A stretch of 64,000 bases of DNA from Macrostomum lignano (GCA_002269645.1 NIVC01000342.1:124001-188000), one strand, 5' to 3'; positions 8,847-64,000 are shown, counted from the first letter of the stretch. The notes: generated by a model from the sequence alone, not told the origin. Translations and numbers: made by a program.

Positions 8847-9004
8847 GTAGACATGTTTCTTTTAGAAGAAGGAGCTTGCAACGCGGTGAGAGGTGAATTA
8901 GCTGAGAGCCAGGCCAGCAGGGCATAAGAAAAAAGCAGATAACATACCAATGGCAACGCCACAGCTCGGCCTATTAAATTAGGATTATTTAACCGAAAGA
9001 AGAA

Positions 9005-22909
<13,905 letters not shown>

Positions 22910-25552: not shown

Positions 25553-26074
25553 GTCTAGCACATACACACTGAACTTCTGCTCATATTCCAGTGAAGAATT
25601 TCTTCAGCTTCAAAACGAGACTATTTATCGGTACTGCAGTTTTTGGAAATTAACCAAGCCAAGTAATCTTTTAAACAAATTGTCCCGGGTTGGTTCGACT
25701 GGGTCCCATTTTGTGGGGGGTGGGTTGAGTTGTCACTTCCATATCTCCTGTGTTCCCTGAGCGGGGTTTAGACTGGAGCTCATCAATTGTCAAAACAACC
25801 TGCTGCAGGTATGCCCTCCCCCCACTGCCTAAACAGAGTTCCAGTCTCTGGGGTGGAGCCAAGCGGATTATTCCAGCTGCAATTGTTAATTGAATCGCCC
25901 TATCCAAGCACTCGCTGTCCCACACGTTGATAAAAGGAAGCTGCGAGGAAGAGATGATGGATCTTTTGCCCACCGGAATTTTTGGCAAATTGGCTCCCCT
26001 GCTGCAATTGGTGAGCTTGTTTTAACACTTGTTAGAATACCTTTGCTAACTTCATTCCTTCCTACATACTTATG

Positions 26075-27555: not shown

Positions 27556-30500
27556 ATGTCCCCTCAATCAGCAGGCATGGCAAACACTGAGAAGCAGAGC
27601 GCCGCAGACGCAAGCGGTACAGCAGAAGCAGAGGCTGGCGGCTTCGGCATCGCCAATTCGTTCCGCGAATTCGCCCAGTACACCACCGCCCACGGCCTGG
27701 GACGCTTCGCCGCCCAGTCGACGGCCTTTGGCCGCACAATCTGGATCGCCTTTCTGCTCGGCACTTATGGCGGTTTCGCTTACCACCTGTTCACCTTGAT
27801 TGACAGGTGAATTCATTTGGGGCAATGAAAATTGGCCGAAGGGTTCACAGCCATGAGGGCCAGCCCAGAGTGTTGACTTGTCTGACCTGACTTAGCTGCA
27901 GGGCGGTCTGAAGACTCGGCGGGGAGGCGAGCGGGTTGTCGTGCAATTCCCCCAAGGCACGGAGAGTGTACATGCCTGACGATTAGAAGATCAAGGCTGC
28001 TGTACACCCTGCGTGAGATCGTGTATGAGTTCATTCCTACGTACAGTATTGGCGGGCTTGCATGTGCTCAGGAGTCAGTAGAAAAGGCACAACTAAGAAG
28101 CATTGACGATGAGTCATCCACTTATCCGTTTGTTCAATTAAACAAATATCAACTAAGAAGCATTAACGATGAGTCATCCACTTTTCCGTTTGTTCAATTA
28201 AACAAATATCAACTAAGAAGCATTCACGATGAGTCATCCACTTTTCCGTTTGATCAGTTAAACAAATCCGTTGACGATGTAGATAATATCAAGATTGCTT
28301 TAACCGTTTGTTCAGTTAAACAAATATCAAGTAGCCCGTGCGTCCGATTTCTGAATTGGCTGAATTCCAATCTACTCACAGATTCACCAGCACGCCGCTG
28401 CTCACAAGCCTGGCCACCTCGCTGCCGTACGAGTTCCCGGACGTGTACATCTGCCCGAAGAATCCGATCTCGATGAGTAAGGCCTACGAACCATTCAAGC
28501 TCAAAGATGACGTGCCGAAGTTGCGCGGACTGAAGAAAGACTGCAACACCACCTGCCAGGCCAGGCTGAGCTACTTCAAGGAATCCGACGTCTACCTGAG
28601 CACGCCAATGTACGCATTCGCTAGAATGGTGTATTCTGTGGAAGCTGCTCTGATGCCCAAGCTCAACAACAAAGGCATCGGTGAGGAAACTCATTCTGAG
28701 GGACAAGTTAATGTTTGAGTGATAAATACTCGAGGCACAGTTGAGGGCGGATTACATGGTGTTTTTAGCACTAATTTTGGCGCTTTGAAGCAAATTTACT
28801 GATTTCAGATAACGGTTCACAAGGTGGGACGGGGGGACAAGATATTGTAATGTCCCCCCGGTAACGAAACCCCTGGGTAAGACTAAAGTGTTAATAAGAT
28901 GCATTGTTTAAGGCCAGTAGCACACTCAGTAAGGGTTCGCAATTATTTGGGACACAAAATGCACAGAAATTGAGTCTTGACCTGCGACTTTTTGTTCATT
29001 GCCTGGTGATGTGAAAATCGTTTACGTATCCGTGTGCGTGGGCATGCTCTAGGTCAGTGGAATGGGAGGCAGTGTTCAAAGCCCTCCTAGCAAAATACGT
29101 AGCCAACTAACAAGGCACTAGTTGAATCTTGATAGTGAAAACGAGTTCTTTAGTTTGCAGAGGGTGCGGGTGGGTCTGTAAGTGCGGTAACTCACGGTAT
29201 TTCTCGACGCCCGTCCCAACATCCTGCGCGGGCGATGACTGGCGGGTCACGTGATCCTGCTGCTGCCCCCAGCCTCTACATTCTGTTGCTCCCCTTACAG
29301 GGCCCATTTAGGCGGGGCCAGGCCCGAACCCGTCGATACGTGGAGACTGCCTGCTTTGCGACGCCGTCTGACGCACCCTGGCCGCTTGACTTTGCTTCTC
29401 TGGGTTGCGTCTCTTGTTGCTGTTGCTGTAAAATCAATATTTAAGCTAGATGCATGACGGTGCATTCATTTGAAGCAATTAGAATGCTTCGAATTTTACA
29501 AGTGCTTTCTCCTAATTAATTCAGGAATCATCCCATGCACTTCATTCTATTCATTACAATGCAAGCATACCGGTACACTACAAAGAAGAAAAGAAGTGCA
29601 GGAGAAAAGCTACTACACCATAATTTCCCACGTTTTGTCTTTCAGCGGGAAACACCAGCGAGTGTCGCTTTACCCTGGACGGAACCGAATACACCGGAGA
29701 CAAGAACTCGGTGCCCGTGTTCGGCAACAGCCTGAGGCTGACACTGCCACCAAGCAATCTGACGCAGCCGAACTACGTCACGGAGCTGCCCTGCATGCCA
29801 TGGAACGAGGCCGCCCGTCTGCTTGCAGAGGCCGGCCTCAAGAACATGTCGGACAAGATTCTGTCCTATAATTTCTCAAATAATGACGCCAGGTGCCGGA
29901 CTCCACCTGGCCTGCCGCTGGAGGAATTCGACAATTTCACCAGTGAGTTTCTGGGGCTGTCTGCTCATGCCAGGAACGCTCGCTCATTCAAAGTTTTTTG
30001 ACTTTGGCATAAAATTCATTGCCCAGATATGAAAGTCTCAGGTTATTAAATGTTATTTCTTGTACTAACCAGAGCCAGAATTGGTAAAATATGCTATTAA
30101 AAGCAGCGGAGAGCGGAGCGGAGTTACTCAGCAAAAAACGTGTCTGACTCTCGCGCCACGACCCCTGGTTCGATTCCCGTGCGCAAACAAATTTATTTGG
30201 TACTTGTGCACGAAAATTGGCCGGCGGGTTTTCATGCGATTTACAGCCGTCAGGGCCAACCCCCAAGGCACAGAGAGCGTACCTGCCTGACGGTTGAAAA
30301 GTCAGAAGCCCGCTGTACACCCTGTGTGAGCGTGCGGATGAGAGACTGCCAAAGCGCTGGTTGTGGGATGATGTCGCCGAAGGCGTTGCGCCAGGGTGCC
30401 TCCAGCCCTGCTGCATCAAATGTAGGTTTACATTTGATGCAGTTGTTGTGAACTCTTGGCCATCCTGTGTTTCGTACACTGTTGAAGACCAGCGCAAAAA

Positions 30501-33500
30501 TGAAATGCGCTTGTTTCGTATCTATAATAACGTTTCTTACTATAGTTGGTTGACTTCGATTCACTGCTATAACACGCTTATATCTGATCGAATGAATTTC
30601 AGCCTACCTGATCAACCTAGACAAGGATCCAATCTGCTATCAGGACAGCGCATCGGACAGATTTTTTGTGAGCTGCTTCGGCGGCCAGATTCCCACTATG
30701 AACGTCGAAAAGTGCACCGAATGCTGCTTCAAAAACAACTTCAAGTACTACGGGTTGCAGTACTATGATTGCTTCTGCAGTAACAGAATTGTGCCTGGCA
30801 ACACGGCAGACTCGAGTAACTGCAAGTACTCGTGTCCCGGACAGGCCGCGGATGCGGATGAAACCTGCGGAGGAGACGGCTTGTACATGAGCGTGAAGCA
30901 GATCCGGCCCACGGGTGAGGGAGCCTTGTCTTGCATATTAAAAGCGGCGCGGTTGCATAATCTCTCGCCTCTGTAGACTCTTTCTCGAGCCCTTCATTTC
31001 GGCACGGTGCCTAAGTTAAGGGCAAGAACGGAAGGCACAGGAGGGAAGGCACAGGAGGTAAGGCACTGAGAGAAGGCACATGAGGGAAGGCACAGGAGGG
31101 AAGGCACAGGAGGTAAGGCACATGAGAGAAGGCACAGGAGGGAAGGCACAGGAGGGAAGGCACAGGAGGGAAGGCACAGGAGGGAAGGCACAGGAGGGAA
31201 GGCACAGGAGGGAAGGCACAGGAGGGACCTCTACCAACTCTACAGTGCCTGCTAATTCCATTCTTCCTAAATTCTATTCCATAAATAAAGTTCCCAAATC
31301 AATGAAGCTGTATTACGTATCTACTACTGTCGTATAATTTTTGCTTATATTATCTAAGAAACAAAGTTTCCCTGGCCCTCTACTTTAATCATAATTGACT
31401 TTCTTTTTTCAGCCGACTTGCCTGTATTCGCGTCCTACGGAGGCTTCCTGGCCGACTATCTGATTGGGCCGTACTGTTTCTACAATGATACGCACAATGG
31501 ACTGGCGCTGTCCTACTGCAACATCCCGTTCTGCTGTATGCGGCATTGCGTTATCTGAGCTTGCTCTAATGAGGGGCCGTAGTCCAGTGGTCTGGCGCAG
31601 CTGCTCTCGTGTGCCAGCGGCCCAGGCTCGATTCCAAGTGCAGTCACAATAATCTGGGACTAAATTGGAATCTCAGCTTGGCTCTGCTCGTGCAATTAAC
31701 GGCCTCGAGGGCCAACCCCCCAAGGCACAGTGAAGTGTACATGCCTAACGATAAATAAAGTTAGGGCCGCTGTACACTCCTGTGTGAGTGTGGGCCTGCG
31801 TACGTATCCGCGCGCTTGTGTGCCTGCTCAGGGGAGTCGGCGGAATGGGCAGTAATGCCTCTCGCCGGTTGTGTGTTGATGTCGCTTAAAGTGCGCCAGG
31901 GTGCACACAACCCCCCGGCCTCTAATAAAAAAAATCATCCCAGTTGCTAAGGTCCTTCAGACTAAAAACAAGTTTCGCTCATATGCTTTCGCCTATCTGC
32001 AAATTTAACTTTCTCATTGCTTCATCCGCAGCCGCCTCGGGAACCTACGACTGCGTGGTGCGCAGCTCCGGCGACGTCGCGGAGAAGCAGTCAGCAAAGT
32101 ACACAGGCAACCTGAATTATACCAACTCCGGTCGGGAGTGCATGGTGTGGGACGACGTGAAGACTGCCATAGCCAAGCGGACGCTTAGCCTGGCAAACTC
32201 AGATTTGATTTCTTGGAATTTTCCATTCCGATGTGAGTTTTTCAGTGCCGTTGTCAAAAAACCAATATAAAAATTTATCAATCATCAATACAACTAAAAT
32301 TGTCATATTTTGCCCAGACTACTCAATCGATCAGATGATCATCTTGACGACTGACTACGCGATAAGCAATCGCACGAACTACTGCAGAGCGGCCCACGTC
32401 CTGTACGATGCCACTTACTACGATGAGACTGGCACGAACCGGGTTGGCTCCAGGTAAGCTCCCCAGCTAATTTTTTTCAATGAAATACCTGTGATAATTA
32501 TTATCCAGCTTGGATTCCTGTACGAGCTACAAATTCAAAAACTCCCCATCAACCCAGCCGAAGCACACTAATCTCGTCGTTGGTTCCCGGATGTTTCTAT
32601 GTTAACGAGGAAGACAGTGAAATTCACTTTGAGACTTGCGCTATCGAATCCTGCGGTGAGGTCGCCAACTGTGTCTAAAAACCTTACTTTGATTACATCT
32701 GCACTAACAAATATGTTTGTTCAACTTTAGTTCAAAAGGTAAATTCAGTCAAAATTTGGAAATACTACACCAGGGGTCAGCAAACTGTTTTGCCTCAATG
32801 AGAGTGGAAAGAAGATGGGATGGAAGATGAGAGATGAGAGAAGAGAGAAGAGAGATTAGAGAAAGGATAGAAGATAATAGAAGAGGAGAGTGGAGAGAGG
32901 AGAGGGTAGAGACATGAGAGTGGAGAGAGGGGAGGGGAGGGAGGGGAGAGGTTAGAGAGAAGAGAGTAGAGAGAGGAGAGAGGAGAGAGGAGAGAGGAGA
33001 GGGGGAGAGAAGGTGAGAGAGGAGGGAAAAGAGAGAGAGGGAGAGAAGAGAAGAGACATCAACCTTGAGCGGGCCGGATTGCTATTTTGAAGTTTCAAAG
33101 GACCGAGGGCCGGATAGAGAGGCTCTGCGGGGTTGCATGTCACCCGCGGGCCGGAGAATGCACCGAGACATTAATTTCTACTCACTCACTTCAGTGGAGA
33201 CCAGTCCCAGCGTCCCTGGCATCGTCAGAAACAACATTGGAACAGCCGAACTGGCTCGCCAGTTTGGTCCCAGCCTCGACGTCAGCTTGATTGACTGCGA
33301 CTTCTACGGCTGGCAGTGCACAGCCAACCATTTTCAGGAGGTCTTACACCCAGAGAGCGGTGTCTGTTATAAGTTCATGAAAGAGCCATTTATTACAGGT
33401 TTGAGCCTGCCAGAACTGAAAGAAGCCAGCCTGGCTGTTCAGCTGTTCACCGACGCCACCGATTCCGACGGCATCGGTCCAGAGCAGGCGCAAGACGCGT

Positions 33501-35759
33501 CGAAGGCGATCTTGAACGAGCTGGGCGATTCAAGCAGAGCAGGCAACCGTGCTTTTGACGTAATGACCTAATCACAGTTATAATATCAAATTAAGCGAAT
33601 ATTATTGTTAGCCAAACTAAGCCGAGAACAAACGCAATAAATGCAGGTGGTCATCGTACCAAACGGCACGTTTCCATGGATATCGCAAGCCTTTGGAGTT
33701 GTCAAGTCTCAAAAGTCGGAATTCAAGGTGCGTCTCGACAGGACAACCCGACTATCAAAGCCATCGCTGGAGTGCAGCAAGGCCGCACCGCCTGTCACGT
33801 ACGTTCTAGACTATTGGAAGCCTGCTGGCCTGCCATCAAATGTGACGTAAGCATTTCGAGCTGTTTCAAGAGATTGATTCCGATGTAATTTTTTAACTTG
33901 TAGCAAAACTTTTTAGGGCCTTGATGGAAACCACCTTTTGGGCTGTTGAAAATGCAGAAAATTGGACTGCTAAGATTGACTTGATGAAGCAACTGGTTAT
34001 TAGCTATAACGGCATGAAGTAAGTGTCGTTGTCTGCGTGTACTTCTGCTGTATCACCCCAACAGTGTAAACTCGCATGGAGCAACTTGGCAACAATATTA
34101 TTTTTAGGAGCTCAACAAAGCAGAAAGTGACGTTCCAGACAAGCACCCAGGAGGACTGCCTCAATGAGTACGTGCTGCGCAGATTCGCCGAAAACTGCCG
34201 CTGTCTGCCGACTTTCCTACCCATCCCTGAGCAGCTATTTGCCAAATATCCCATCTGCTTCAACTCAACAGACATAGAAAATTTGTACAAAACTGACCAA
34301 TGCTTCATCCAACAGAAGAAGAGGGTGAAGACTTACCGAGTTGAAGCTCGGGACCATTGCATGCCGCCTTGCGAGACAAGAAAGTACACGGTCAGCCAGA
34401 ACTCTTTTCCCTGGCCGAACGTTCGGAGGCAGGTGTCGGAGGGTTTCTTAAGAAATCTGGCCAAAACCTACGGCTATCCGAATCGAGTAAAGTCTCTAAG
34501 AGGTCCGGGTGTCATCTATTCGACCTATCTTCGGTACCGGAGTTTGAGCGAAAACATAACTGAACTCATGAACTTCGACTACCAGCTGCTCACGCTGCAG
34601 GACCAGCTGGCCATGGTGTCGGTCTCGTCGGCTCAAATGTTTGGCGAAGACATCCTGGAGGAAGAGGCCTATCCAATTAAGAACTTGCTGGCGGACATGG
34701 GCGGTGAGCGCTTATTTACTTTCCACAGTTTCGCAACACAGTTATAGTACGTAATTTCGCAGATATTGCCTGGATACTAGAGTTTCAGTAACTCTTCTGT
34801 ATATATGTTTCTAATTACGTAGTTTCATAAATCTGATCAATTCGCCTAAAGGAAGTACAAAAAAAATTTGGCCGGAGAGGTCGTTGTGCGATTCACACCG
34901 ATCGTGGCCAACCCCCAAGGGCACAAAGAGAGTACAAGCCTGACGATGTGAAAGTCAGGGCAAGTGCCTGTCGGCGTCAGCGGGATGGGCAGAATTATTG
35001 TACCTTACCTCACCCCTGGTCATGGGACCGTGTCACCAAAGGCGGTGCCCCTGGGTGCCAATCTTGGTTAGAGACAGGGCCTGTGTGCACCCTGGAGCAC
35101 TTAAGCGACATTGTCACAACCCTGGTGAGAGGCATTGCTGCCCATTCCGCCGACTCCCCCGAGCAGGCACACAAACGCGCGGATACGTACACAGTCATAC
35201 GCACAGGCACACACTCACACAGGAGTGTACAGCGGCCCTAACGTTATTCATATCTTTAGGCACCTACACTTCACTGCGCCTTGGGGGGTTGGCCATCAAG
35301 GCCGTTCATTGCACGAGCAGAAATTAATTTGACTGCACTTGGAATCCAGCCAAAACCACTAGACCACCAGGCTATGCCTTTCGCCCATGGGTGCTAACAG
35401 CCCTCCTGAGATTATTATTAGATTATTAGCTGAGAAAACAGCGATAAAAGTATATCCTAGCACCTGCATTCAACGGCTCGAACACAGGCATCCTGGGCCT
35501 CTGGTGCGGCGTCTCCATTCTGACCGTGTGCGAGCTGATCGAGCTGTCAGTCTACGTAATTCTAACGCTGAAGCAGTTCTGCGCTGGGGACAAACAGCGG
35601 CGCGGCAGGTCTGACAGGGGCGCCAGCGGACACGACGGCCCCGGGGCTGCGTACGCCGTACCGGAACTGCCAACAGCGCCGCCATCGATGAAAGACGATG
35701 CCAACAATGGCGGTGAAGTTGCTGATGAAGACGGTGGAGTTGAAACCAGCCGCTTTTGA
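27556..35759 (+). CDS. DEG/ENaC (amiloride-sensitive Na channel family) subunit A with kringle(WSC)-kringle insertion, about 1042-1049 aa, 12 exons
   Basis: Exons 27556(or 27577)-27806, 28382-28680, 29646-29942, 30603-30914, 31413-31535, 32032-32232, 32318-32453, 32558-32655, 33195-33559, 33647-33846, 34108-34703, 35488-35759. All junctions are GT-AG and phase-consistent; total from 27577 is 3129 nt. Motifs: pre-TM1 TTAHG, TM1, [24 protein letters not shown], Cys-rich thumb (NCRCLP, CMPPC), TM2 [19 protein letters not shown]. Confidence 0.93.
28090..28268. repeat. 60-bp tandem repeat x3
   Basis: Three consecutive 60-nt rows are nearly identical. Confidence 0.9.
28770..28875 (-). mobile_element. 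Remnant end of a MITE related to 50306-50941
   Basis: Minus strand begins CAGGGG, then GGGGGGACA..TGTCCCCCC hairpin, CCCACCTT and CTTCA..GCGCCAAAAT in the same order as the left end of the 50306 element. Confidence 0.45.
29200..29400 (+). mobile_element. 3' fragment of the same LINE family
   Basis: [16 protein letters not shown] peptide; nt similarity to the reverse complement of 40870-40960. Confidence 0.65.
30100..30400 (+). mobile_element. SINE A-related subfamily copy
   Basis: B box CTGGTTCGATTCCCGTGCGCAAAC, then GGCCAACCCCCAAGGCACAG...GCTGTACACCC. Related fragments at about 27945-28020, 34890-34965, 48945-48975, 60750-60790, 61450-61530, 61930-62020. Confidence 0.7.
30603..30914 (+). 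other. WSC domain exon of channel A (phase 1-1)
   Basis: ICYQD...[10 protein letters not shown]...[13 protein letters not shown]...CKYSCPG...TCGG..MSV matches the WSC pattern GCYxD..CxxxC..YAGL..CxC..CxxxCxG..CGG..SV. Confidence 0.88.
31030..31228. repeat. 14-bp minisatellite (GGGAAGGCACAGGA)n
   Basis: Direct reading. Confidence 0.9.
31573..31932 (+). mobile_element. SINE family A, full length (intron 5 of channel A)
   Basis: Collinear and highly similar to 62109-62477 from the tRNA head to the poly-A tail. Confidence 0.85.
32032..32655 (+). other. Kringle domain 2 of channel A (3 exons)
   Basis: YDC...[18 protein letters not shown]...NYCRA...PGCFY...ETCAIESC: six Cys with the YxG, SGxxCxxW and NYCR kringle hallmarks. 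Confidence 0.85.
32771..33165 (-). mobile_element. hAT-Charlie-like MITE carrying a GA/CT microsatellite
   Basis: CAGGGGTCAGCAAACT end; shares CAATCCGGCCCGCTCAAGGTT and CCGGCCCTCGGTCCTTTGAAACTTCA with 39638-39900 and 19535-20110. Confidence 0.6.
35085..35350 (-). mobile_element. SINE family A, truncated, reverse strand
   Basis: The reverse complement matches the SINE A body (GATTCCAAGTGCAGTC...GGCCAACCCCCCAAGG...GTCGCTTAAGTGC). Confidence 0.8.
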
Positions 35760-36409
35760 GTTGTAGTAAGACAAATATTTAAGCATAGAGAATAACAAAA
35801 ATGGCTGTTGTGTTTTTAATAACAGACAGCCTTGAGAAAATATTGAATAATTCTAAACTACGAAAGGTATATATACGAAGTCAAATTATTGCAACCTCTG
35901 ATATTTTGTTCTCTAATATTTTTAATGCACACGAACGTTTTTATGAGCTTTTCAAAGCTTTTGTTTATTTAAATGATATTGATATTGCCTTTGTTTGTCG
36001 ATATTTTTTCTGTGATTACTATTTTTCAACTATTTATTGTTAATTGTTAAATTATTGTTAAAAATCGGTTTGAAAGTGTCTTTTATCGTTCTATAAACTA
36101 TATCGTTATAGTTCGCTAAAGATAGTGTATAAAAAAGTTTGCTTATTGAAACAATGTAGGAACTCCTTCCACAGAATTTATATACCCTGTTTTAGTTAAT
36201 TCCCATTTTTTTTAGAATTTTTCAATCTACTGTAATATCAGACGATTTTAAAAAACTATTAAAAATATAACTGTCAGACCGGATCTCCCTTAATTGCTCC
36301 CACCAGAAACACCGGTAAAAATTGAGGGTCGATAGCCTGTAAATTAATCTAAGCGTATATGGCCTGCGATGTGTCAACGGAATTAAAGCGTAGGCATAGG
36401 GGTACGGAT

Positions 36410-37908
36410 ATTCTATTCTATTCTATTCTATTCTATTCTATTCTATTCTATTCTATTCTATTCTATTCTATTCTATTCTATTCTATTCTATTCTATTCTA
36501 TTCTATTCTATTCTATTCTATTCTATTCTATTCTATTCTATTCTATTCTATTCTATTCTATTCTATTCTATTCTATTCTATTCTATTCTATTCTATTCTA
36601 TTCTATTCTATTCTATTCTATTCTATTCTATTCTATTCTATTCTATTCTATTCTATTCTATTCTATTCTATTCTATTCTATTCTATTCTATTCTATTCTA
36701 TTCTATTCTATTCTATTCTATTCTATTCTATTCTATTCTATTCTATTCTATTCTATTCTATTCTATTCTATTCTATTCTATTCTATTCTATTCTATTCTA
36801 TTCTATTCTATTCTATTCTATTCTATTCTATTCTATTCTATTCTATTCTATTCTATTCTATTCTATTCTATTCTATTCTATTCTATTCTATTCTATTCTA
36901 TTCTATTCTATTCTATTCTATTCTATTCTATTCTATTCTATTCTATTCTATTCTATTCTATTCTATTCTATTCTATTCTATTCTATTCTATTCTATTCTA
37001 TTCTATTCTATTCTATTCTATTCTATTCTATTCTATTCTATTCTATTCTATTCTATTCTATTCTATTCTATTCTATTCTATTCTATTCTATTCTATTCTA
37101 TTCTATTCTATTCTATTCTATTCTATTCTATTCTATTCTATTCTATTCTATTCTATTCTATTCTATTCTATTCTATTCTATTCTATTCTATTCTATTCTA
37201 TTCTTTCTATTCTATTCTATTCTATTCTATTCTATTCTATTCTATTCTATTCTATTCTATTCTATTCTATTCTATTCTATTCTATTCTATTCTATTCTAT
37301 TCTATTCTATTCTATTCTATTCTATTCTATTCTATTCTATTCTATTCTATTCTATTCTATTCTATTCTATTCTATTCTATTCTATTCTATTCTTTTCTAT
37401 TCTATTCTATTCTATTCTATTCTATTCTATTCTATTCTATTCTATTCTATTCTATTCTATTCTATCCTATTCTATTCTATTCTATTCTATTCTATTCTTT
37501 TCTATTCTATTCTATTCTATTCTATTCTATTCTATTCTATTCTATTATATTCTATTCTATTCTATTCTATTCTATTCTATTCTATTCTATTATATTCTAT
37601 TCTATTCTATTCTATTCTATTCTATTCTATTCTATTCTATTCTATTCTATTCTATTCTATTCTATTCTATTCTATTCTATTCTATTCTATTCTATTCTAT
37701 TCTATTCTATTCTATTCTATTCTATTCTATTCTATCCTATTCTATCCTATTCTATTCTATTCTATTCTATTCTATTCTATTCTATTCTATTCTATTCTAT
37801 TCTATTCTATTCTATTCTTTTCTATTCTATTCTATTCTATTCTATTCTATTCTATTCTATTCTATTCTATTCTATTCTATTCTATTCTATTCTATCCTAT
37901 TCTATTCC
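36410..37908. repeat. (TTCTA)n pentanucleotide array, about 1.5 kb
   Basis: Direct reading; explains ORF 36359..37912. Confidence 0.98.
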
Positions 37909-40528: not shown

Positions 40529-43500
40529 ATGGCTTTTCATGAGAAGGTAGGCAAAATGCATTTCACTTATGTTTTATATTGAATAGCTTGGCTACTCCAT
40601 GGTTTTTGTTCGGCTACTGAAAGCTTCTATATGACTCAGAGCCTTTTGTATTTTACTGTCAATAACTGATTGTGAAAATCTTTATGCCAAAGTTGCTTCA
40701 TTTGGCAGTCAGCTAAAAAAATTGCCGCGGTAATTCGCCTTTGGTATCATCAATACGGGAGAAAACAAAAAAAAACAACAACAAAGTACGCAGCCCTGCA
40801 TGTAAGGTCACAGTTAGAGCAGGGCGTGTCAGATGGCGCGCCGCAGAGCCTGAGAGCAGACGAAGTCGGGCGCCCGGCGTCGCATAGGAGGCAGTCCACT
40901 TATCAACGGGTTCGGGCCTGACCCCGCCTGAACGGCCCTAGCAAGGTGAGCAGCAGAACGTCCTGAACAGGTTGGGGACAGTAGCCCTTGGCCCGGATCA
41001 CGTAGCCTGCCGGTTGAAGTCGCCGCCGGCGCAGGATGATGGACGGGCGCTGCAGCTTGCCCCGATCGTACAGGGCCTCGGTCCCGACGCTCTCAACAGC
41101 TTGAAAGGCCGCACGGAGAGCAGCCCTGAGTGCGCCGAGTCCAGCTGCCGCTCCAGCGTAGCCGTCAGCGTCCACGTCTCGGCGTTGTATAGCAGGACGG
41201 TTTCGACCACCGCCTGCCACAGCCGAGCCCTCTGGCGGTCGGGCAGCGCTTCGGACTGGAGGTTAACATCGGCCCACGGTTTAGGCAGGCTGGACTCCCA
41301 GAGTAGAGTAGCTGGTCGAACTATTTGGATTGTCTTCCTCCTGGGAACGAATGGGAGAAAAAACGGCTTATCGTTCCCACTGTATAAGTAGATTAGATAT
41401 TTGCGTAATATAATTTCCTCAGACTGTTCAGCTGGCAAAGAAACTCTCGAGACAGAATGTGTACAAAGAATTTTAGTGGCTTTGTCAAGCAGCTTGTAGA
41501 GGCCATTATCACTGCTAATACACCCTTGAATAATGGACCTAACATTCTACTAGACAAAAGGTAGGATATTTTTTTACACTCTGACTAAATATTGACCAAG
41601 CAAACAGAGCTTCCACCAGTGCACTAACTGCTTTCTGTGGGCTGGGTTTCTTAAAAGAAAATGAGTTCCTTTTGAAATCTTAGCAGCAATTTAGGCCGCT
41701 ATTCAGGCAGTCGTCAAGAGTCGTCAGGCTCGATTCCAAGTGCAGTCACATTAATTTGGGGCTGAATTGGAATCTCGGCTTGGCTCTGCTCGTGCAATTA
41801 ACGGCCTTGAGGGCCAAACTCCAAGGCACAGTAAATGTACATGTTTATCGATAAATAAAAGTTATGGCCGATGTACACTCCTGTGTGAGTGTGTGCCTGT
41901 GCGTATGATTGCCAATGTATCCGCGCGCTTGTGTGCCTGCTTAGGGGAGTCGGTGGAATGGGCAGCAATGCCTCTCGCCGGTTGTGTGACAATGTCGCTT
42001 AAAGTGCGCCAGGGTGCTCACAGCCTCTTGCCTTTGATAGAATAAAAATACACAGATACGCTCGTAGTTCAGTAAAGGCAATGCTCAACTTTCAATAGCA
42101 CTGCCAATCAAACTGTTGGGATTCAACTTGGCAGGTTTCGGTCGACGAGGTTCAATCATTTTCTACAGATGATGCCGCCCAAACTCCTGCTGAGGGGAGT
42201 TCAGCTGCGAGGGGAGGCGCTGCCATCCTGTCGGCTTCCTTCTGGAATTTTTTCAGCTACACATCCGCCCACGGTTTAAGCAGGCTGGAGTCTCAGAGTA
42301 GAGCCGCTGGTCGAACTATCTGGATTGTCTTCCTCCTGGGAGCATATGGCGGCTTCTGCTATCACCTTTACACTCTGATTGATAGGTGCGGATTTAGACT
42401 TAATTTTAAATTTATTTACTAAATTTGCACCGAAAAGTACTTACTCTCGAACGATCTACACCCAGATACTCGAGCACGCCACTGCTGACGAGTCTGACCA
42501 CATCGTTGCCCTACCAGTTCCCGGACGTGTACATTTGCCCGGCGAACATCCTGTCAATGAGCAAGCTCAGCAGCAGGTTTAGCGCTACTTGGGACAGACC
42601 GAGGCTGCGTGGACTAAAAAAAGAGTGCAATCTGACTTGCCAGATTCATTTGAGCAAATTCGACATCACCAGGGGAGAAGACGAAGTGTCGCTGAGCTCG
42701 CCAACTCTGGCCCTGGACGATGCGGCCAACACTGCCGAACAGTCTATCATCGCCTGGTTTCAGCGGAAAGCCTTCGGTAGAGTGAAATGCATTGATCGTG
42801 CAATCACAGAATAAGTATTTTGACTCTAGGCCAAGCCAACTATAATATCGATTTGCACAACTCTTCGAGCGAACAAATTTTCGGTCCAAATCCTGTGAAA
42901 GTCATAAATTTACAACGGAAATAACATTTTAATGGATTAAAAAATGTTATGGATTGCAAATCTAAGCCTTGAGAATTCGACTCAGATTCCTTAATTATGT
43001 TCATCCATCCTCGGAAAAGTATTTTAAATGATTGAAAGAATTTCGCTTCGAATGGAGCTTTATGAGTATATTCTGTAGCACAGACCGGGGGGGGGGTCAA
43101 AGTCTCAGGGAGGAACGGAAGTCGGAAAAGTGGCTCTAGAACCCTACACTTTAGCGTGCTAAGGTTTGGTAACCTTTCGCATCGATGCTCATACCATTTC
43201 CAGATCAGTTTTCCACTTGCCGTTTCACCATCGGCGGAGGCGAGTACAGTGGAAACAGAAGCGCGGTGCCTCTGTACACCGACAGCGTTCAAGTGAGGCC
43301 GCAATCGAGCAGTGCGCCCGCACAGCCGTACACGTTCGAGACCCCGTGTCTGGCCTGGAACCGGGCTGCGGACAGCCTTAAATCCAAGGGCTTGAACTCC
43401 TTGGCTGATAGGATCCTGGCGCTAAACTACTCTGATGGCGACGCGCGGTGTCGCCAAGCGAAAGGACTAACAATGAAAGATATCAATCCGTATGCCACAG

Positions 43501-46500
43501 GTACGATATTAAAAACTCACAGTTTAATTTGCTAGAGTCTATTCATGACTAGCCATTATTGGGTAAAATAGTAAAAAATGAGATGGTGTAGCAATGCTAA
43601 TTGCACTGAATCTATACGTGACGAGGTACACTCAATGGAACAGGCCTGGTTCGCTCTCACTAGGGGGGTTGTAGCCTAGAGGTTAGAGCGTCGGACTCAC
43701 GACTTGAAGATCGGTCGGGGGTTCGATTCCTGCTCCCACTGGAGCAATTTGTGTCCTTGAGCAAGACACTTAACTCTGAATTGCTTTAGTTCACATAGCT
43801 GTAAAATGGGTGCCAGCATTAGCTGGGGTAATTGATGGTGTGGGTGGCGACCCCCCAGTCCTCGTACGCAGCCTTCAGATGCGCCGCGCAATAGCTGCGG
43901 CTGAGCTGTCGGTTGCACATCTGGCCCGATTGGGGCAGGTGTAATAAATAATTATTATGATCGCTCGCAAATTTTGTAAAATCTATAGGAGATTTTCGAA
44001 GCTGTATTCTAAGAGGTATCTTGATGACCGCGTTTAATTTTTTTTACAAATTTGTAAATACAGATTTTTGCTTATTATTTTCATACTTGATCCCATTAAG
44101 TGCCACTGAAATTGGAGTCCGGCTGCTTCAGAGAGAGTGAGAGTAGAAAGCACTTCACCTACAGCTGTTTCGCCCTGACCATCACGCTGCTGACAGTCGA
44201 CGTGTGCTTGGAGTGCTGTTACAACCGAAACTTCACCCACATGGCACTCAGAAGGTCATCCTGCTATTGCGGTAGCGAGCCCGTGTCTGAAGGAATCGAT
44301 GACGACTTCTGCGATTCGCCCTGTCCGGGAGACTTCAACCAATGGTGCGGGGGAGAGGCCTCAGTCAGCGTCTACAAAGTTAGAAACGTTGGTATGAACA
44401 AATCTATTTCAAGTATTTATTCTCGATCGATATTTTGATCAATTTTAGTTTGACTCTAATAACCTTTGGTAAGTTTTTGCCACTTCAGTCAGCTTTGAGA
44501 GTTTGAGTATTTTCAACTGTTTTACTTGGGTTCAGCTGCACCGATGAACAAGGAATCTTTAACTATCGATTAGGTGACACTCTTACCCCCTATCTGCCAA
44601 TGCGTCTGCATCGACCCACCTCCAGTCATCTGCACCAACCCCCCGCCGTCTGCACCTACCCCCAGCCGTCTGCATCGACCCCCCAGCCCCCCCAACCGTC
44701 TGCACCAACCCCCCAGCCGTCTGCACCTACCCCCCAGCCGTCTGCCCCAGCCGTCTGCACCAACCCCCAACCATCTGCCCCCCCAGCCATCTACGCCAAC
44801 CCCCAGCCGTCTGCACCAACCCCCAACCATCTGCCCCCCCAGCCATCTACGCCAACCCCCAGCCGTCTGCACCAACCCCTCAGCTGTCTGCCCCCCAGCC
44901 ATCTACGCCAACCCCCAGCCGTCTGCACCAACCCCTCAGCCGTCTGCCCCCAGCCATCTACGCCAACCCCCCAGCCGTCTGCACCAACCCCTCAGCTGTC
45001 TGCCCCCCAGCCATCTACGCCAACCCCCAGCCGTCTGCACCAACCCCTCAGCCGTCTGCCCCCAGCCATCTACGCCAACCCCCAGCCGTCTGCACCAACC
45101 CCTCAGCCGTCTGCCCCCCAGCCATCTACGCCAACCCCCCAGCCGTCTGCACCAACCCCCAACCATCTGCCCCCCCAGCCATCTACGCCAACCCCCAGCC
45201 GTCTACACCAACCCCTCAGCTGTCTGCCCCCCAGCCATCTACGCCAACCCCCCAGCCGTCTGCACCAACCCCTCAGCCGTCTGCCCACCAGCCATCTACG
45301 CCAACCCCCCAGCCGTCTGCGCAACCCTCACCAGCTGCATCCATCTCCCCATTTCTTCTGCCCTGGCCCGTTGCGTGCCAAATTATGATTGTTTGCGTTT
45401 TTATGCACTGTTTACCCCCTTGTCTCTAAGAGCTTAGTCCCTGCGTTTTACCGACAAATACTAACAGGCGTTGGGTAACCTTTGTAGCCAATCTTTGGTG
45501 AGTATACCCGACCATGGGAATTCCCCGCAATGCTCCATTATAGCAAAAAACAGGATAAGGTGATTCTTGTTTTGAATAACTGATTCCGTTGTTCTGATTA
45601 TCAGTTGAAGCACTTAAATCAGACTTTTCATACGGCTTAATAAAATTCCTTTCTAAAACTAACTTGTAATTCTAATTTGAACCCAGCCTGGGAGGACACG
45701 AAAATCTTCGTGCCGTACGGAAGCAAGATGACTCGCTTCCTGGAGGGACCGATCTGCTTCTATGAGGACCCAGCACGTGGCCTCTCCGTATCGCCTTGCA
45801 ATATTCCGTTCTGTCGTGAGTAGCCTTGTCTTGCCTCGATTTAAACAGAAAGTACAATATCAAGGTCCACTAGTGCTAGTTCGTTGTACTACTAATCGCT
45901 CGATAGACTATTAATCTACAGTTAACCTCCAAAAACACATTATTCAATTTTTTATTGTCTACGGTCTGGTCTCATATATCGTGACTCAAAAAGGAGCCAA
46001 TTATATGATATATCAAAGCTGAAAACGAGGCCAATTATATGAACCCTATTCCCTCTGTATGAACCAAACAGGTTGCAACAAATTGCAACAAATTGGGAGC
46101 GTTGAATCAAACAAAAAACCGTGCATTTTAAGTCGTAAAACATAGTTTAACATCTCGAATGAAAACTGGGAGTAAGTAGGAATAGGAATAAAGACAATCG
46201 GAATAGTCATAGTCATAGCAGTTGGGTCATAGCAACAAGCCAGCAAAAAATCATTCCCAAGTAATGATGACAGTCTCTCCATTAGCGCATAAGTTAACCC
46301 GAAGGTCCTCAAACGGGATTTTCACAGTGTTAGTCTCACCGTTGACCGCCATGCGCATCCTCTTCTTTGCGGAAACACTGATCCTCTCAGAAAGGAGATT
46401 CAATGTAGGCTCAACGGACGCCACGGGTCCTCCTGCGTGCAGTGCGCAGGTCATACGCCAAGTCTTCCTCCAAGTTTAAGTTGAAGTTGCAACCCTCACT

Positions 46501-49500
46501 GATTCTATTTGTTTGTCTGTCTCTGTTTCTCACTGTCACTTCTCACTGTCTCTACTCAAAATTTTACTGTCTATGGTAAATATAGGGGGACTGCGCCCCC
46601 CCCATACCCCCGCTTACATGTATGTGGGGGTTCCGATATCTGTAGATTAGGTACAATCTTTGTCTGTTCTTTTGGTGTTTTTTTGGTGCTCTTCAGGTTT
46701 TTTAACCTTATAAATATTGACCATAGATACTCTAGAATTCAATAATTTTTCTATGGTTAAAAACGTCACTAATACCAATTATGGCGGTGAAATTTCCCAG
46801 CTGCGCCTCCAGAGTACGACTGTACAGCGAGCGGCGCTAGCGACGACACAGAGGTTCTGGAAGCGGCCCGCTACAGCGGTTGCCTGAATGTCACGGCCTC
46901 CGGTCGAGCCTGCCTGATCTGGGCGGATACAAAACGGCGGGTGGAGAACGGCTCGATGCGACTACCGGAGATTCACCACGACTGGGACTCGATGTTTTCC
47001 AGTTGGTTACATTCTGATCTGCAATTTCCCTTTCAGAATCGAAATATGGATTGCAATGCAAGAAATAGAAATATTACTCTGGCTACCACAATTTGACTGC
47101 CAAAAATTCAGGTTACACTACGTTTCTAATTTTGATTAAGGTTTGGGATATGTTTGTCACTAAAGTGACTTCCAGCAGCTCCCAAAGACTGCTCTCAAGA
47201 TTCTTAGAATTAAAAATGTAAAGCGGAACATCCTGTATGAATTTAACCTACTTTGAAAGTTCATTGGGAGCGATCGAATCCGTTTGAGGAGTAGGCTAAT
47301 TTCTTCTTCACAAATAGCAGAAGTACCACTTCAAAGCATTATTTAACTGGGTCTGCAACCTCAAGTTCAGTGTAAACAATTTTGAGTCAGTGAATTGAAG
47401 TTTATTCAAGTCAAAATTTCTGATGTTGAATCAGCAAACAAAAATTCTGTTTCAGCAAACAAAGATTCACTCGATGTCACGGGTAAACGATGGTTTTTAT
47501 TTGTAGTACATTTCCATTAACGGTATACGTCGGCCAAACGTCGGTGGGATGTATTTCGAGTACGAGCTACTCTACGTCACTGCGTGCTCACTTGCAAACT
47601 TTCAGACAAATCAATAGTGCAACTGATTCTGCAAACTCCGGACTACGAACTCAGCAATGAGTCCAATTACTGCAGGGCTGTTCACGCCATGGCGGACACC
47701 TTGTATCAGTTGGCGCCAGGCAACAATGGCTCAAATGCTTACGTGTTCGTGATGATTTACCTTTCAGTTAGCTTATTAGCTAATAGGAGCCGAACCACAC
47801 CTCCCAGTCCTTTCGATAGGAGCCGAACCACACCTCCCAGTCCTTTCGATAGGAGCCAAACCACACCTCCCCATGCAGTCCTTTCGATAGGAGCCGAACC
47901 ACACTTCCCAGTCCTTTCGATAGGAGCCGAACCACACTTCCCAGTCCTTTCGATAGGAGCCGAACCACACCTCCCAGTCCTTTCGATAGGAGCCGAACCA
48001 CACTTCCCAGTCCTTTCGATAGGAGCCGAACCACACCTCCCCATGCAGTCCTTTCGATAGGAGCCGAACCACACCTCCTATACAGTCCTTTCGATAGGAC
48101 CGAACCACACCCCCAGTCCTTTCGATAGGAGCCAAACCACACCTCCCAGTCCTTTCGATAGGAGCCAAACCACGCCTCCCAGTCCTTTATATAAAGCCAA
48201 ATCTCGCCATTTATTCAATATATCTGATATTACTTTGTCCCCAATGGTAAGTGTGAAATCCAAACTCGACTATTTCAGTCGCGAAACAGTGGCCAAATCT
48301 ACAGAACCGGGCTGCTTCTATTTAAACGAAGCCGAAAATACCATCCTATTTGAAGCTTGTACGGTGAAGCCGTGCTGTGAGTGAGCTGCATTTATTCATT
48401 GATGCAATAGAAATAGCACATTGGTCCTTCAATTAGCAACTTGACTTTGGCTTCATTTGGGTGAATTCATCGATCCTATAAAACCCAACCGACCGGCTCC
48501 CAGACAAGGCCAGTCCAGCCGTGACGGGATCGGTGCGCGCTCGAGTTGGTAGCGCTCCGCTGGCCCGACAGTTCGGTGTCGACCTGGCCGACGGCCTGAT
48601 CAAGTGCGAGTTTAACGGCCAGTCGTGCGGTCCAGCGAATTTCCAGTCGGTACTGCAGCCAGAACTGGGCGTCTGCCAGCGACTGTTGAAGGAGCCACTG
48701 CTACGTGGCCTCAGCTCAAGTGAAGTGGCCGATGTTATCTTTCAAGTGCAACTGTTCAGCGATGCTACTGATTCGTTTGGCGGAGTTTACCGCCAGGCCA
48801 ACAAGTTGGCCAATGTTGTGCTAGGCGGTGGTGGCAGCGGAAGTTCTGCGATAAAGGTGGCTTTCGCTTCTTGATAAGTAGAATGAAAAACATGACCATT
48901 GCTTGCGCCAAACCTAAAGACAACACGAAATCGATACGCTTGACAAGTCAGGGCCGTTGTACACCCTTTGCGAATGCTTGGACTACTTGGATTGCGTCCT
49001 GGTTGTTCACGTCTCCCTGAATTTGATTAATATATACCATCCGCTCCCTCACACTGTTAGGTGATCGCGGTCCCGGAAGGCACATTCCCTTGGGCAGCGA
49101 ACGCTCTGGAGGTCATGCCTGCGCAGCACACCAAGCTGAAACTGCGATACGATAGAACTGTCAGGTACTCAAAGCCACCAGTCAGAGAGTGCCTTCGTGA
49201 AGTTATGCCAGTAACGTATATGCTTGACCCCTGGACACCTGCCAGCCTCAGCGACGAAGTACTGTGAGTACCCAGTCCAAGTGGGTCTAGATTCTGGACA
49301 CTGGTGCGCCCCACTTACAAATATTGGATACACTAATGCACTAACGCATCCCTCCTGCATTGTCAATTATCAACCATGCCGGATTTTACATCAGGCACTT
49401 TTTTAAATCAATACGTACCCGAACTCCATCAGCGACCGGATGGACTCGCTGTTTACCGGACCAATTGAGGCCTCGAATTGGACTATCAAGACAGATATTA

Positions 49501-51514
49501 TAAGGGACCTATTTCAGAGCTACAGCAAATTCAGGTAAATCTGTTTGAATCGCTTGTGCAATTGCATGATAAAGATGTTTCAATAAGAACAAAAAACTGC
49601 AGGGGACCAATGCGAAGGAAGATGAAATTCAAAGCAAGCACTCTGCAGGACTGCTTCAACGAGTTTGTACTACATAGATTCGCCGAAAATTGCAGCTGCC
49701 TGCCAACATTTCTGCCCATCCCCGAGCAGCTGTACGCCAAATACCCGATTTGCTTTAACACTACTGACATCGAGAACTTGTACGCCACTGACCAGTGCTA
49801 TATTCGCCAGCTAAATCTGCTGAAAAGCTACCGTAGCGAGGCCCGAAGCCGCTGCAAGCTGCCTTGCGAGACCCTCGAGTTCAAAGTCAGCCAAGTGGCC
49901 AACACGTGGCCGAACATTCGTCGCGACACTCTTTTAAAATTCCTGAGCGGCCTGGCCAGCAGGTTCGGCTACCCCAACTCCGTCAGCCGATTCCGCGGCC
50001 CAGTGAGCCTGTACTCCGCCTACCTAAGCGCTCTGGCCCTGACTCGAAACTTTCGCGGAACAGCCAAGCTGACAGCTAATCTGACCAGATTCGACTACGA
50101 GATGAGCGTCCTGCAGGACCGCCTGGCCATGGTGTCGGTGTCCGCGTCCGAGCCCCTAGGCGAAGAGAAAATCGAAGAGGAGGCCTACCCGGTCAAGAAC
50201 TTGCTGGCCGATATGGGAGGTTTGTGAATTGGGAGCAAGCACAGTTTACCTATGACGGACACTGTACTGAAAGAAAATGACTGCTTATAAAACCATGCGC
50301 ACAAGCAGGCGCGTCACCACCGGGCAGAGACAGGGAGGGCATGTCCCCCCAGTAAAAGCTATGGGGGGACATGCCAATACTTTCCCCCCCCCACCCCACC
50401 TTTTGACTCGTGGTAATCAATAATTTTTCTTCAGGGCGCCAAAATATAGCGCCTACGGCGCTAAAATAAGTGCCTGCGGCGCCAAAATGTGCCTGCGGCG
50501 CCAAAATAGTGCCTACGGCGCTAAAATGAGTGCCTGCGGCGCCAAAATGGTGCCTGCGGCGCTAAAATGGTGCCTACGGCGCTAAAATGTGCCTGCGGCG
50601 CCAAAATGGTGCCTACGGCGCTAAAATGTGCCTGCGGCGCCAAAATAGTGCCTACGGCGCTAAAATGTGCCTGCGGCGCCAAAATGGTGCCTATGGCGCT
50701 AAAATGTGCCTGCGGCGCCAAAATAGTGCCTACGGCGCTAAAATGTGCCTGCGGCGCCAAAATGGTGCCTATGGCATTAAAATGAGTGCCTGCAACGCCA
50801 AAATGAGTACCTGCGGCGCCAAAATTATGGCTGACAACACGATTCTCGAAATAATGGAAATGCAGGAATTTAGTCATGTACATGTACATGTTGAATTCTT
50901 GGCTTTGTCCCCCCACCATAAAATCAATGGCGACGCCCCTGCGCACAAGTGATAATTTCGACAGTTACCAAGGCCATCCGCTGACGTCACTGCTAGTGCC
51001 AGGGGTTCATTGAAGCTCCTAAATCTAAACCTAAATTTAAATCTAAAGTTGGTCCGTTTCACAGCTAGCAAGGTCCGTTTCGCAAACCCAGAGAACGCAT
51101 GCGCACAAACATACCCAGACAGGCACGCACACTAATTCTGTGTGTGTGTGTAGGTCCAAATTCGGTGCCCGCAAACCCCACATTAATGAGGGCAACACCG
51201 CAGAATCGAACTGGAGCGAGGATCGATCTGGCCATCTCGGGCACCACATGCCCATATCGACTTGGTCGATTTGATCAATTTTCAACCGAACGCCCTATTT
51301 GTCAGGCATCCTGGGCCTGTGGTGCGGCATCTCTCTGCTGACTGTGTGCGAGCTGCTCGAACTGTGGGTTCACGTCGCCCTGCGGATGCACCAGCTGTGC
51401 TCGGCCGCTGTTCACACTGGCGATGATTCTAGAGCCAGTGGCGAGCGTCGCGACGACAGCGAGACTAGCGCGGGGAACAAGCGCGGCAAGTCGACGACTA
51501 GCAAACCAATGTAG
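40529..51514 (+). CDS. DEG/ENaC subunit B, tandem paralog of A with the same kringle(WSC)-kringle insertion, about 1037 aa
   Basis: Exons [40529-40546 inferred], 42135-42385, 42466-42776, 43204-43500, 44101-44391, 45687-45815, 46801-47001, 47606-about 47741, 48279-48376, 48504-48856, 49061-49263, 49603-50219, 51306-51514. Intron positions and phases match gene A; three exons have identical lengths (297, 201, 98 nt). Motifs [48 protein letters not shown]. The first exon and the donor near 47741 are uncertain. Confidence 0.88.
40830..41262 (-). mobile_element. 3' fragment of a non-LTR retrotransposon (RTE-like RT C-terminus), frameshifted
   Basis: Minus-strand peptides LPDRQRARLWQAVVETVLLYNAETWTLTATLERQLDSAHSGLL and [46 protein letters not shown]. 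LLYxxETWT is typical of the region C-terminal to LINE RT. Clade is an inference. Confidence 0.7.
41266..41346 (+). pseudogene. Orphan duplicate fragment of the channel HG/TM1 exon
   Basis: Encodes TSAHGLGRLDSQSRVAGRTIWIVFLLG; about 90 percent nt identity to 42261-42341 by eye. Truncated on both sides and abutting a LINE fragment. Confidence 0.8.
41724..42047 (+). mobile_element. SINE family A, 5'-truncated
   Basis: Starts at CAGGCTCGATTCCAAGTGCAGTCAC and is collinear with 62109-62477 to the AATAAAA tail. Confidence 0.82.
43663..43960 (+). mobile_element. tRNA-derived CORE-like SINE (family B)
   Basis: A box TAGCCTAGAGG, B box GGTTCGATTCC, then TGTGTCCTTGAGCAAGACACTTAAC...CTGTAAAATGGG resembling the CORE domain; AT-rich tail. 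Confidence 0.7.
44590..45330. repeat. C-rich compound minisatellite (CCAACCCCCAGCCGTCTGCA / CCATCTACG subunits)
   Basis: Direct reading; explains the Pro-rich ORFs 44574 and 44600. Confidence 0.9.
46801..48376 (+). other. Kringle domain 2 of channel B
   Basis: YDC...RYSGCLNVTASGRACLIW...SNYCRAV...PGCFY...EACTVKPC. Confidence 0.82.
47785..48185. repeat. 33-bp minisatellite (GTCCTTTCGATAGGAGCCGAACCACACCTCCCA)n
   Basis: About 12 copies in the intron within kringle 2 of channel B. Confidence 0.92.
50306..50941. mobile_element. Non-autonomous hAT-type DNA transposon (MITE) with internal 39-bp tandem repeat
   Basis: TIRs CAGGCGCGTCACCA / TGGCGACGCCCCTG (12 of 14 match); perfect 8-bp TSD CGCACAAG at 50298-50305 and 50942-50949. 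Confidence 0.85.
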
Positions 51515-54520: not shown

Positions 54521-59718
<5,198 letters not shown>

Positions 59719-60220
59719 GTTCAGCGTCGGTAACCCCTGGGATTGCCAAATATTGCTTCAAAGCAGGGCCAACTGCTTTAACTACGCAGCGCCATCTAGC
59801 TAATGTTAATAAACCTGTGCTTGCAGCTTTATTTGCTTCCAATTGACAACTCTTCCGACACAAGCAAAGGTTTGCGCGTCTAACGTCTTGCCTCTCTCTC
59901 TTTCTCTCTCTCTCTCTGTTGTCAAGGGGCAAGTCAAGAGTATGGCAAATGCTATTCAGTTAGAAAGGGCTGGTAAGATGGAGAGCTGCAGAGACCTCAT
60001 TGGGTGGCTAGTTGCTGAGGCCTGTTCATTTTTCTGTGCATACGCAAGTCCGCTTTCTGCTAGATAGCAACCCCAGCCTCTACACCCCCACAACTCTCCT
60101 GCGCCCCTGCTCCTCGGATTCGCACTTGTCAGTTGGTTGCGCATTTTCTGCAAAGGAGCTGCGCTCTGCTCTGTGCTCTATCAGCTCTACCAGCCTGGCG
60201 AGAGGGAAAGAAGAGAAAAC

Positions 60221-63839: not shown

Positions 63840-64000
63840 GGGCAGAGCAGCCCAGCGGTAAACGCGACTGACACTCACGCAACGACCCCTGGTTCGTTTC
63901 CGTGCGCAAACACATTAATTTGGGGCTCGTGCAAAAAAATTAGCCGGGAGCCGCTGTACACCCTGTGTGAGCGTGTGTGTGAGTGCGTGTACTGTACGCG
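63840..64000 (+). mobile_element. SINE A-related subfamily copy running off the window end
   Basis: AGCCCAGCGG A box, GACCCCTGGTTCG B box and GCCGCTGTACACCCTGTGTGAG shared with 30100-30400. Confidence 0.65.

Follow-up and report, generated by a model that had tools for sequence, protein, structure and literature searches.

The window analysed here, a stretch of 64,000 nucleotides of Macrostomum lignano (GCA_002269645.1 NIVC01000342.1:124001-188000), contains two tandem genes, A and B, predicted to encode channel subunits of the DEG/ENaC family with an extracellular cassette in which a WSC domain interrupts a kringle (kringle 1, K1) and a second kringle (K2) follows. Positions are counted from the first letter of the window. 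Gene A is on the plus strand; its 13 coding exons span 27577-35759, and its spliced model encodes 1076 residues without an internal stop. Over 755 consecutive residues this model was identical to the partial M. lignano GenBank protein P0002 (BOX15_Mlig034226g1). The identity spans the junctions 29942/30603 and 30914/31413, and P0002 uses exactly these junctions; database proteins identical to the window translation were M. lignano entries only. The exons 29646-29942 (297 nucleotides, nt), 30603-30914 (312 nt) and 31413-31535 (123 nt) are bordered by AG/GT splice sites, with phase 1 at both ends. Judged by the splice sites and the junctions of P0002, the coordinates, phases and cysteine counts given for gene A in the original prediction, an earlier reading of this DNA, were all correct. 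The features of gene A are:

25974-26012, plus strand: upstream 5' exon (approximate; probably untranslated), located by tblastn of the P0002 N-terminal residues, with a donor GT after it
27577-27806, plus strand: coding exon 1 with the start methionine (MANTEKQ), the HG motif and the first transmembrane (TM) helix of the channel; identical to P0002, Pfam ASC match
28382-28680, plus strand: exon 2, channel ectodomain after TM1, ending in phase 1; 50% identity to paralog B
29646-29942, plus strand: exon 3, N-terminal part of K1 (Cys1, Cys2, Cys3), phase 1-1; aligns to the canonical kringle from Cys1 through CRNPD
30603-30914, plus strand: exon 4, complete WSC domain (10 cysteines), phase 1-1, 104 codons; Pfam WSC 47.2 bits, alignment with 31 WSC domains, Foldseek
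31030-31227, no strand: non-coding minisatellite of 14 base pairs (bp) in the intron that separates the WSC exon from the C-terminal exon of K1; Tandem Repeats Finder (TRF), 14.2 copies
31413-31535, plus strand: exon 5, C-terminal part of K1 (Cys4, Cys5, Cys6), phase 1-1; aligns to kringle GPWCY...C....C
32032-32232, plus strand: exon 6, Cys1-Cys2 of K2, phase 1-1; sub-threshold Pfam Kringle match, E 2.6e-4, and kringles found in the PDB with the family profile
32318-32453, plus strand: exon 7, Cys3 of K2 (NYCRAA), phase 1-2; splice sites
32558-32655, plus strand: exon 8, Cys4-Cys6 of K2, phase 2-1, end of the cassette; splice sites
33195-33559, 33647-33846, 33917-34018, 34108-34703 and 35488-35759, plus strand: exons 9-13, remaining DEG/ENaC ectodomain, second TM helix (GVS motif) and C-terminus; Pfam ASC E 1.6e-51

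The UniRef entry A0A1I8F7R0 (P0001), named 'RRM domain-containing protein', is a frame-shifted and mis-spliced model of the gene A locus (31413-34200), and its name is not to be trusted. Many other M. lignano models in UniRef are visibly garbled as well.

By its domain content gene A is a DEG/ENaC subunit. The Pfam family ASC (PF00858) matched with E 1.6e-51 in two pieces around the cassette, and gene B with E 1.5e-44. The HG motif (TAHGLGRF) before TM1 and the GxS motif of TM2, the features that define membership in the family, are readable in the translation, and the closest relatives of the host protein in the PDB were FaNaC, ASIC5 and ENaC gamma. The cassette comprises about 390 residues in exons 3-8, arranged as K1[WSC]-K2, and has phase-1 introns at both ends. 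It stands between the strand after TM1 (FPxVxxC) and the conserved segment CxFxxxxC...GxC, an interval equivalent to FaNaC residues about 155-207. From solved structures we take this interval to be the finger, which varies more than any other part of the ectodomain and contributes most to regulation, so the cassette would be placed in the finger region of the channel. The original prediction had been made without two points of this context, the DEG/ENaC host gene and the second kringle.

The exon 30603-30914 encodes a complete WSC domain. It scored 44.7-47.2 bits (E 1.6e-11 to 2.7e-12) with the WSC profile (PF01822), the curated Pfam cut-off being 27.8 bits, and the corresponding exon of gene B reached 43.3 bits. 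In an alignment with 31 WSC domains from other organisms its cysteines resolved into the eight canonical ones and two specific for the family. The earlier proposal of an entire WSC domain on a symmetric exon of its own was borne out, the exon having AG/GT boundaries and phase 1 at either end.

The exons on either side carry three cysteines each, and these are kept in every complete paralog. Since each of them has three cysteines and the WSC exon ten, the outer exons need cysteine partners outside themselves. Evidence that together they make up one kringle came from profile comparisons. A canonical kringle profile was built of 56 proteins, all with the Pfam Kringle domain, that were collected from the canonical kringle of a Mytilus WSC-hit protein. 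In hhalign, the profile of six K1 paralogs with the WSC exon deleted aligned to these 56 kringles from Cys1 to Cys6 over 85 columns, with a probability of 96.1% and E 3.6e-9; the six cysteines and the motifs GxxYxG, CxxW, CRxP, GPxCF and CxxPxC were in register. WSC-deleted K1 also aligned end to end with the single Mytilus kringle (P 0.002). Two controls behaved differently: a profile of the WSC exon gave E 0.78 against the kringle profile, and intact K1 with its WSC domain matched the kringle only from Cys1 to CRNPD, the match ending exactly where the WSC exon starts. The alignment of WSC-deleted K1 with K2 crossed the deletion junction (E 8.8e-6). A comparison of K1 and K2 with two sequences was underpowered (hhalign probability 2%) and became informative with six to seven paralogs.

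Because of the profile-profile match, the controls and the alignment of K1 with K2, the homology of the two outer exons taken together to one whole kringle, with the WSC domain interrupting its Cys3-Cys4 loop, is confirmed at the level of sequence. The earlier assignment of Cys1-3 to one exon and Cys4-6 to the exon two further on agreed with the conserved three plus three cysteines and with the profile register. K1 is by the same comparisons a strongly derived kringle. Its Cys3-Cys4 spacing is about 140 residues compared to 10 in the canonical Mytilus kringle (P0019), and once the WSC domain is removed a loop of about 36 residues is left, close to the 34 residues of the K2 loop. Further extra residues lie between Cys1 and Cys2 (about 20) and between Cys2 and Cys3 (about 11), which brings K1 without WSC to 137 residues.

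K2, directly downstream, reads as a second, uninterrupted derived kringle. The spacing of its cysteines is atypical with 28, 52 and 34 residues for Cys1-2, Cys2-3 and Cys3-4, and it scored 21.7-22.3 bits with Pfam Kringle (PF00051), below the curated cut-off of 34.3 bits. The K2 family profile yielded 76 matches in the PDB, almost all of them kringles, the best with E 1.1e-6; almost all matches of a combined K1 and K2 profile were kringles, too. Two introns divide K2 among three exons; the one separating Cys2 from Cys3 is in phase 1, the one within the Cys3-Cys4 loop in phase 2.

The structure of K1 with its WSC domain was predicted with AlphaFold2 (AF2). An alignment of three rows gave a mean predicted local distance difference test (pLDDT) of 48. 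A second alignment of 38 rows, consisting of seven family members and of WSC domains aligned to the WSC part only, raised it to 73, with a predicted template modelling score of 0.65. By region, pLDDT was 84-93 in the WSC domain, 62-92 in the Cys2-Cys3 part of K1 and about 80 in the C-terminal hairpin. A Foldseek search with the model aligned it to the yeast Wsc1 structure (7pz2) over 94-99 columns, with a template modelling score of 0.71 and a root mean square deviation of 2.6-3.2 Å, as expected for a WSC/PAN-like fold. The best Foldseek match was Kremen1, E 3.4e-5 over 232 columns.

Gene B (42186-51514) is a tandem paralog in which the exons of gene A recur at 32-58% amino-acid identity, with unrelated introns. 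The WSC exon 44101-44391 in gene B and its phase-1 flanks had been named in the original prediction; the equivalent exons 43204-43500, 44101-44391 and 45687-45815 are indeed all in phase 1-1, and the phase-1 introns that had been said to bound the whole insert are present in both genes. No database protein was found for gene B. Its features are:

42186-42385 and 42466-42776, plus strand: exons 1-2 (5' end of the first unresolved); paralogy to gene A
43204-43500, plus strand: N-terminal exon of K1 (Cys1-3), phase 1-1, equal in length (297 nt) to its gene A counterpart; paralogy, splice sites
44101-44391, plus strand: WSC exon, phase 1-1; Pfam WSC 43.3 bits
45687-45815, plus strand: C-terminal exon of K1 (Cys4-6), phase 1-1; paralogy, splice sites
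46801-47001, 47606-47744 and 48279-48376, plus strand: exons of K2; paralogy, the donor of 46801-47001 being the least certain
48504-48856, 49061-49263, 49433-49534, 49603-50219 and 51306-51514, plus strand: remaining DEG/ENaC exons; Pfam ASC E 1.5e-44

The first recognisable exon of gene B has no in-frame ATG. In the region 42099-42200 a good acceptor (TTTTCTACAG) is followed by ATGATG, and neither ATG shares the frame of the conserved channel N-terminus. Either the start of gene B is in an upstream exon that was not located, or the gene is defective at its 5' end.

An exhaustive profile search of 1.84 billion representatives revealed the whole cassette only in P0002, P0003, P0004, P0006, P0008/P0152, P0010, P0076 and P0066, all from M. 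lignano, which amounts to at least seven diverged paralogs. Every other top match of the cassette profile was a multi-WSC protein. All cassette proteins that extend far enough also have the DEG/ENaC channel sequence. Their database names derive from the WSC or the ASC match only ('WSC domain-containing', 'amiloride-sensitive sodium channel'), and the kringles are not annotated. Within the cassette the paralogs are 32-38% identical to gene A and keep the nested order and the cysteines; 3 + 10 + 3 + 6 cysteines and the phase 1-1 exons are conserved across old paralogs. In the genes of P0003 and P0152, located on other scaffolds, the N-terminal part of K1, the WSC domain, the C-terminal part of K1 and the first K2 segment are separate exons, all in phase 1-1. 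A mobile module of class 1-1 is an exon or exon set with phase-1 introns on both sides (PMC7502776). This description applies to the WSC exon, to both K1 exons, to the first K2 exon and to the cassette as a whole in gene A, gene B, P0003 and P0152. Because the same phase 1-1 exons and the same nested order occur in paralogs of 32-38% identity, the nested layout is, on the comparison of these genes, older than the duplication into A and B, as the original prediction had it, and also older than the expansion of the family.

Two members of the family deviate. In P0066 (UniRef A0A1I8HMR1) the WSC domain runs straight into K2; the C-terminal exon of K1 (123 nt, frame-preserving elsewhere) and the Cys1 part of K1 are missing. 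Either the gene model of P0066 is wrong, or the protein is a genuine form in which these parts are skipped or degenerate. The nested exon of P0152 (L002 2962-3237) has lost the CGG motif and counts 11 cysteines, with position and phases unchanged, and the stored Pfam annotation of P0152 no longer lists WSC.

Other features of the window include copies of an interspersed repeat at 30100-30450, 31573-31950, 34837-35330 (minus strand), 41726-42080, 61870-62470 and 63786-63998, with 44-93% identity at the translated level. Introns of gene A and gene B contain copies, as do other parts of the window, and some copies begin tRNA-like (GGGGCCGTAGTCCAGTGG...); ARAGORN detected no tRNA gene across the 64,000 nucleotides. 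Mini- and microsatellites are very abundant in the window, with 30 TRF rows of score 200 or higher, some of them overlapping. Upstream of the channel genes, at 8993-12276 on the plus strand, two long open frames together contain five cadherin repeats (Pfam Cadherin E 4.9e-28 and 2.8e-43); by this domain content the region is probably a protocadherin-like gene. On the minus strand, 54524-59757 holds two open frames, one of 523 residues and one of 579 residues with a DUF4550 match (E 7.8e-26), in a G+C-rich region (0.55-0.63). Three arrays identified with TRF were:

36409-37907, no strand: (TATTC)x300 array between gene A and gene B
44622-45327, no strand: 56-bp array in the gene B intron between the WSC exon and the C-terminal exon of K1
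47783-48188, no strand: 33-bp array in an intron of gene B K2

The best explanation of the locus, to which we assign a probability of about 0.75, is a DEG/ENaC gene with a phase-1-bounded cassette, in which a derived kringle holds a WSC exon in its Cys3-Cys4 loop and a second kringle follows. The simplest origin is probably that a phase 1-1 WSC exon was inserted once into a kringle loop: the exon would have entered the already enlarged loop through introns, and this would have preceded the expansion of the family. The cassette as a whole, which is phase 1-1 too, may have been put into the channel gene before or after that event, and two shuffling events are a reasonable inference. The halves of K1 may still pair via the canonical disulfides 1-6, 2-4 and 3-5, with the WSC domain projecting from the Cys3-Cys4 loop. 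An entry of the WSC domain via an ancestral kringle intron common to K2 was considered and not adopted; the intron in the K2 loop is in phase 2, and its position is shifted by several residues.

Several results weigh against this explanation. WSC-deleted K1 of gene A stayed below the Pfam Kringle cut-off with 12.2-12.3 bits (E 0.23), a match that covered the last 21 profile positions only, and WSC-deleted K1 of gene B had no Pfam Kringle match. Of six WSC-deleted paralogs two matched, all below threshold, the best with E 0.059; Kringle was the sole Pfam family that appeared in the six. Searched against the PDB, the six-sequence K1 profile yielded one plasminogen kringle with E 0.52, and a two-sequence K1 profile nothing significant. 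Deleting the WSC exon and rescanning for a kringle had been set beforehand as a check: it failed with Pfam on single sequences (12 bits compared to 34.3) and succeeded with family profiles (hhalign E 3.6e-9). In the AF2 model the first 44 residues, the Cys1 region, have a pLDDT below 50, and both runs predicted two helices of pLDDT around 90 between Cys2 and Cys3 of K1 (residues 52-73 of the modelled segment, in exon 3 of gene A, about window positions 29795-29865), where canonical kringles are almost free of helices. Foldseek searches with the model gave no significant kringle-only match. A relative without the WSC exon was not found among the 1.84 billion representatives searched, down to about 100 bits. 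Finally, with the phase-2 intron of K2 lying a few residues off in the equivalent loop, a shared ancestral intron is not evident.

Among the other explanations, the best surviving one, which we consider improbable, regards the two pieces of K1 as remnants of two kringles that once flanked the WSC domain (KR-WSC-KR), the present layout having arisen by deletions and not by exon insertion. Its starting point is plausible: the N-terminal part of K1 followed by WSC repeats the KR-WSC order of Kremen1, to which Foldseek aligned the model over 232 columns, serial WSC-kringle proteins exist, e.g. Mytilus P0019, and a further kringle, K2, is located directly downstream. It requires, however, two independent in-frame deletions that left exactly complementary kringle parts, a single exon insertion being the simpler account; with its WSC domain deleted, K1 aligned to a single kringle with neither an overlap nor a missing segment, and its residual loop of about 36 residues resembles the 34-residue loop of K2. 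Still a little less probable is that the flanking exons form a lineage-specific cysteine-rich domain with a likeness to kringles by convergence or composition, or that these exons fold separately. The sub-threshold Pfam scores, the insignificant search of the PDB with the K1-only profile, the predicted helices, the poor model around Cys1 and the missing Foldseek kringle match would agree with that. They are opposed by the full-length profile-profile match (E 3.6e-9), in which six cysteines and the motifs YxG, CxxW, CRxP and GPxCF stand in register, by the cysteine-rich negative control at E 0.78, by Kringle as the sole Pfam family to appear, and by the PDB matches of the combined and K2 profiles, almost all of which were kringles. 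Very improbable is an artefact of the gene model, with the WSC exon skipped or used in another transcript and thus absent from a mature mRNA with both flanking exons: skipping of the symmetric exon would keep the frame and the UniRef model P0066 lacks the C-terminal exon of K1, but independent GenBank models of four paralogs place the WSC exon between the same neighbours, open frame, ten cysteines and splice phases are kept at 32-38% identity, and many UniRef models of M. lignano are garbled, P0001 for example.

The combination of domains in the cassette is known from Kremen1 and Kremen2 (KR-WSC-CUB), which likewise join a kringle to a WSC domain within a single extracellular unit. In Kremen these domains are serial, a CUB domain follows, and the protein is a single-pass receptor, whereas gene A has the WSC domain inside the kringle, K2 after it and a two-pass channel as host; Pfam found no CUB match in the gene A protein, which is not a Kremen by its domains. 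The earlier claim of a nested layout, unlike the serial KR-WSC of Kremen, held, as K1 matched the kringle profile with the WSC domain removed and the match of intact K1 with WSC stopped at the insertion. Mollusc proteins with serial WSC and kringle domains (Mytilus XP_076108178, five WSC domains, then one kringle) are secreted and likewise contain both module types, but there the order is strictly serial, the kringle canonical and a channel absent. With the canonical kringles of plasminogen, tPA, HGF, ROR and prothrombin (PF00051), K1 has the six cysteines and the main motifs in common, in register from end to end of the profile-profile alignment. Canonical kringles have about 80 residues, 10 of them between Cys3 and Cys4, whereas K1 has 137 residues without WSC and three extra segments and scores below the cut-off. 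The lysine-binding aspartates of plasminogen-type kringles are located in the Cys3-Cys4 loop; in the sequence of K1 the loop aspartates of lysine-binding kringles are absent.

Within the DEG/ENaC family, elaborations of the finger are represented by the GRIP domain of ENaC, the extracellular regulatory and cysteine-rich domains of nematode degenerins and the peptide site of FaNaC. Gene A has the family core (ASC, HG, GxS) in common with these channels and its extra sequence occupies the same variable region of the ectodomain. Whereas the known elaborations are sequences specific to their families, the cassette of gene A consists of mobile extracellular modules. A literature search revealed no report of an ENaC with a WSC domain, and among the publications listed, those that mentioned ENaC together with kringles concerned proteases or unrelated topics. 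Judged by title and abstract, none of the publications listed seemed to deal with a domain inserted in a kringle.

In Kremen1, kringle and WSC domain are rigidly paired and bind Dickkopf through a joint surface (PMC5014086). By analogy, the nesting would fix kringle and WSC domain of the M. lignano channels against each other, and the fixed unit in the finger might bind a ligand, a glycan or a matrix component as an integral module of the channel and modulate gating. Tentatively, the nested kringle-WSC could be a new composite module with one binding surface that couples the binding of a glycan, a matrix protein or a peptide to gating, as a built-in tether or receptor specific for Macrostomum; we regard this as possible, though unlikely. 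If true, it would be a Macrostomum-specific solution, unlike the separate matrix partners of the nematode touch channels. Small disulfide-rich extracellular modules are normally arranged in series; here, a nested case on a phase 1-1 exon has been kept through many duplications. This suggests that exon shuffling can build nested architectures as well, and that a kringle can tolerate an insert of 100 residues in its Cys3-Cys4 loop. For the DEG/ENaC family, a subfamily with kringle and WSC domains in the part of the protein that presumably controls gating may provide a system to study the coupling of ligands or matrix to channels.

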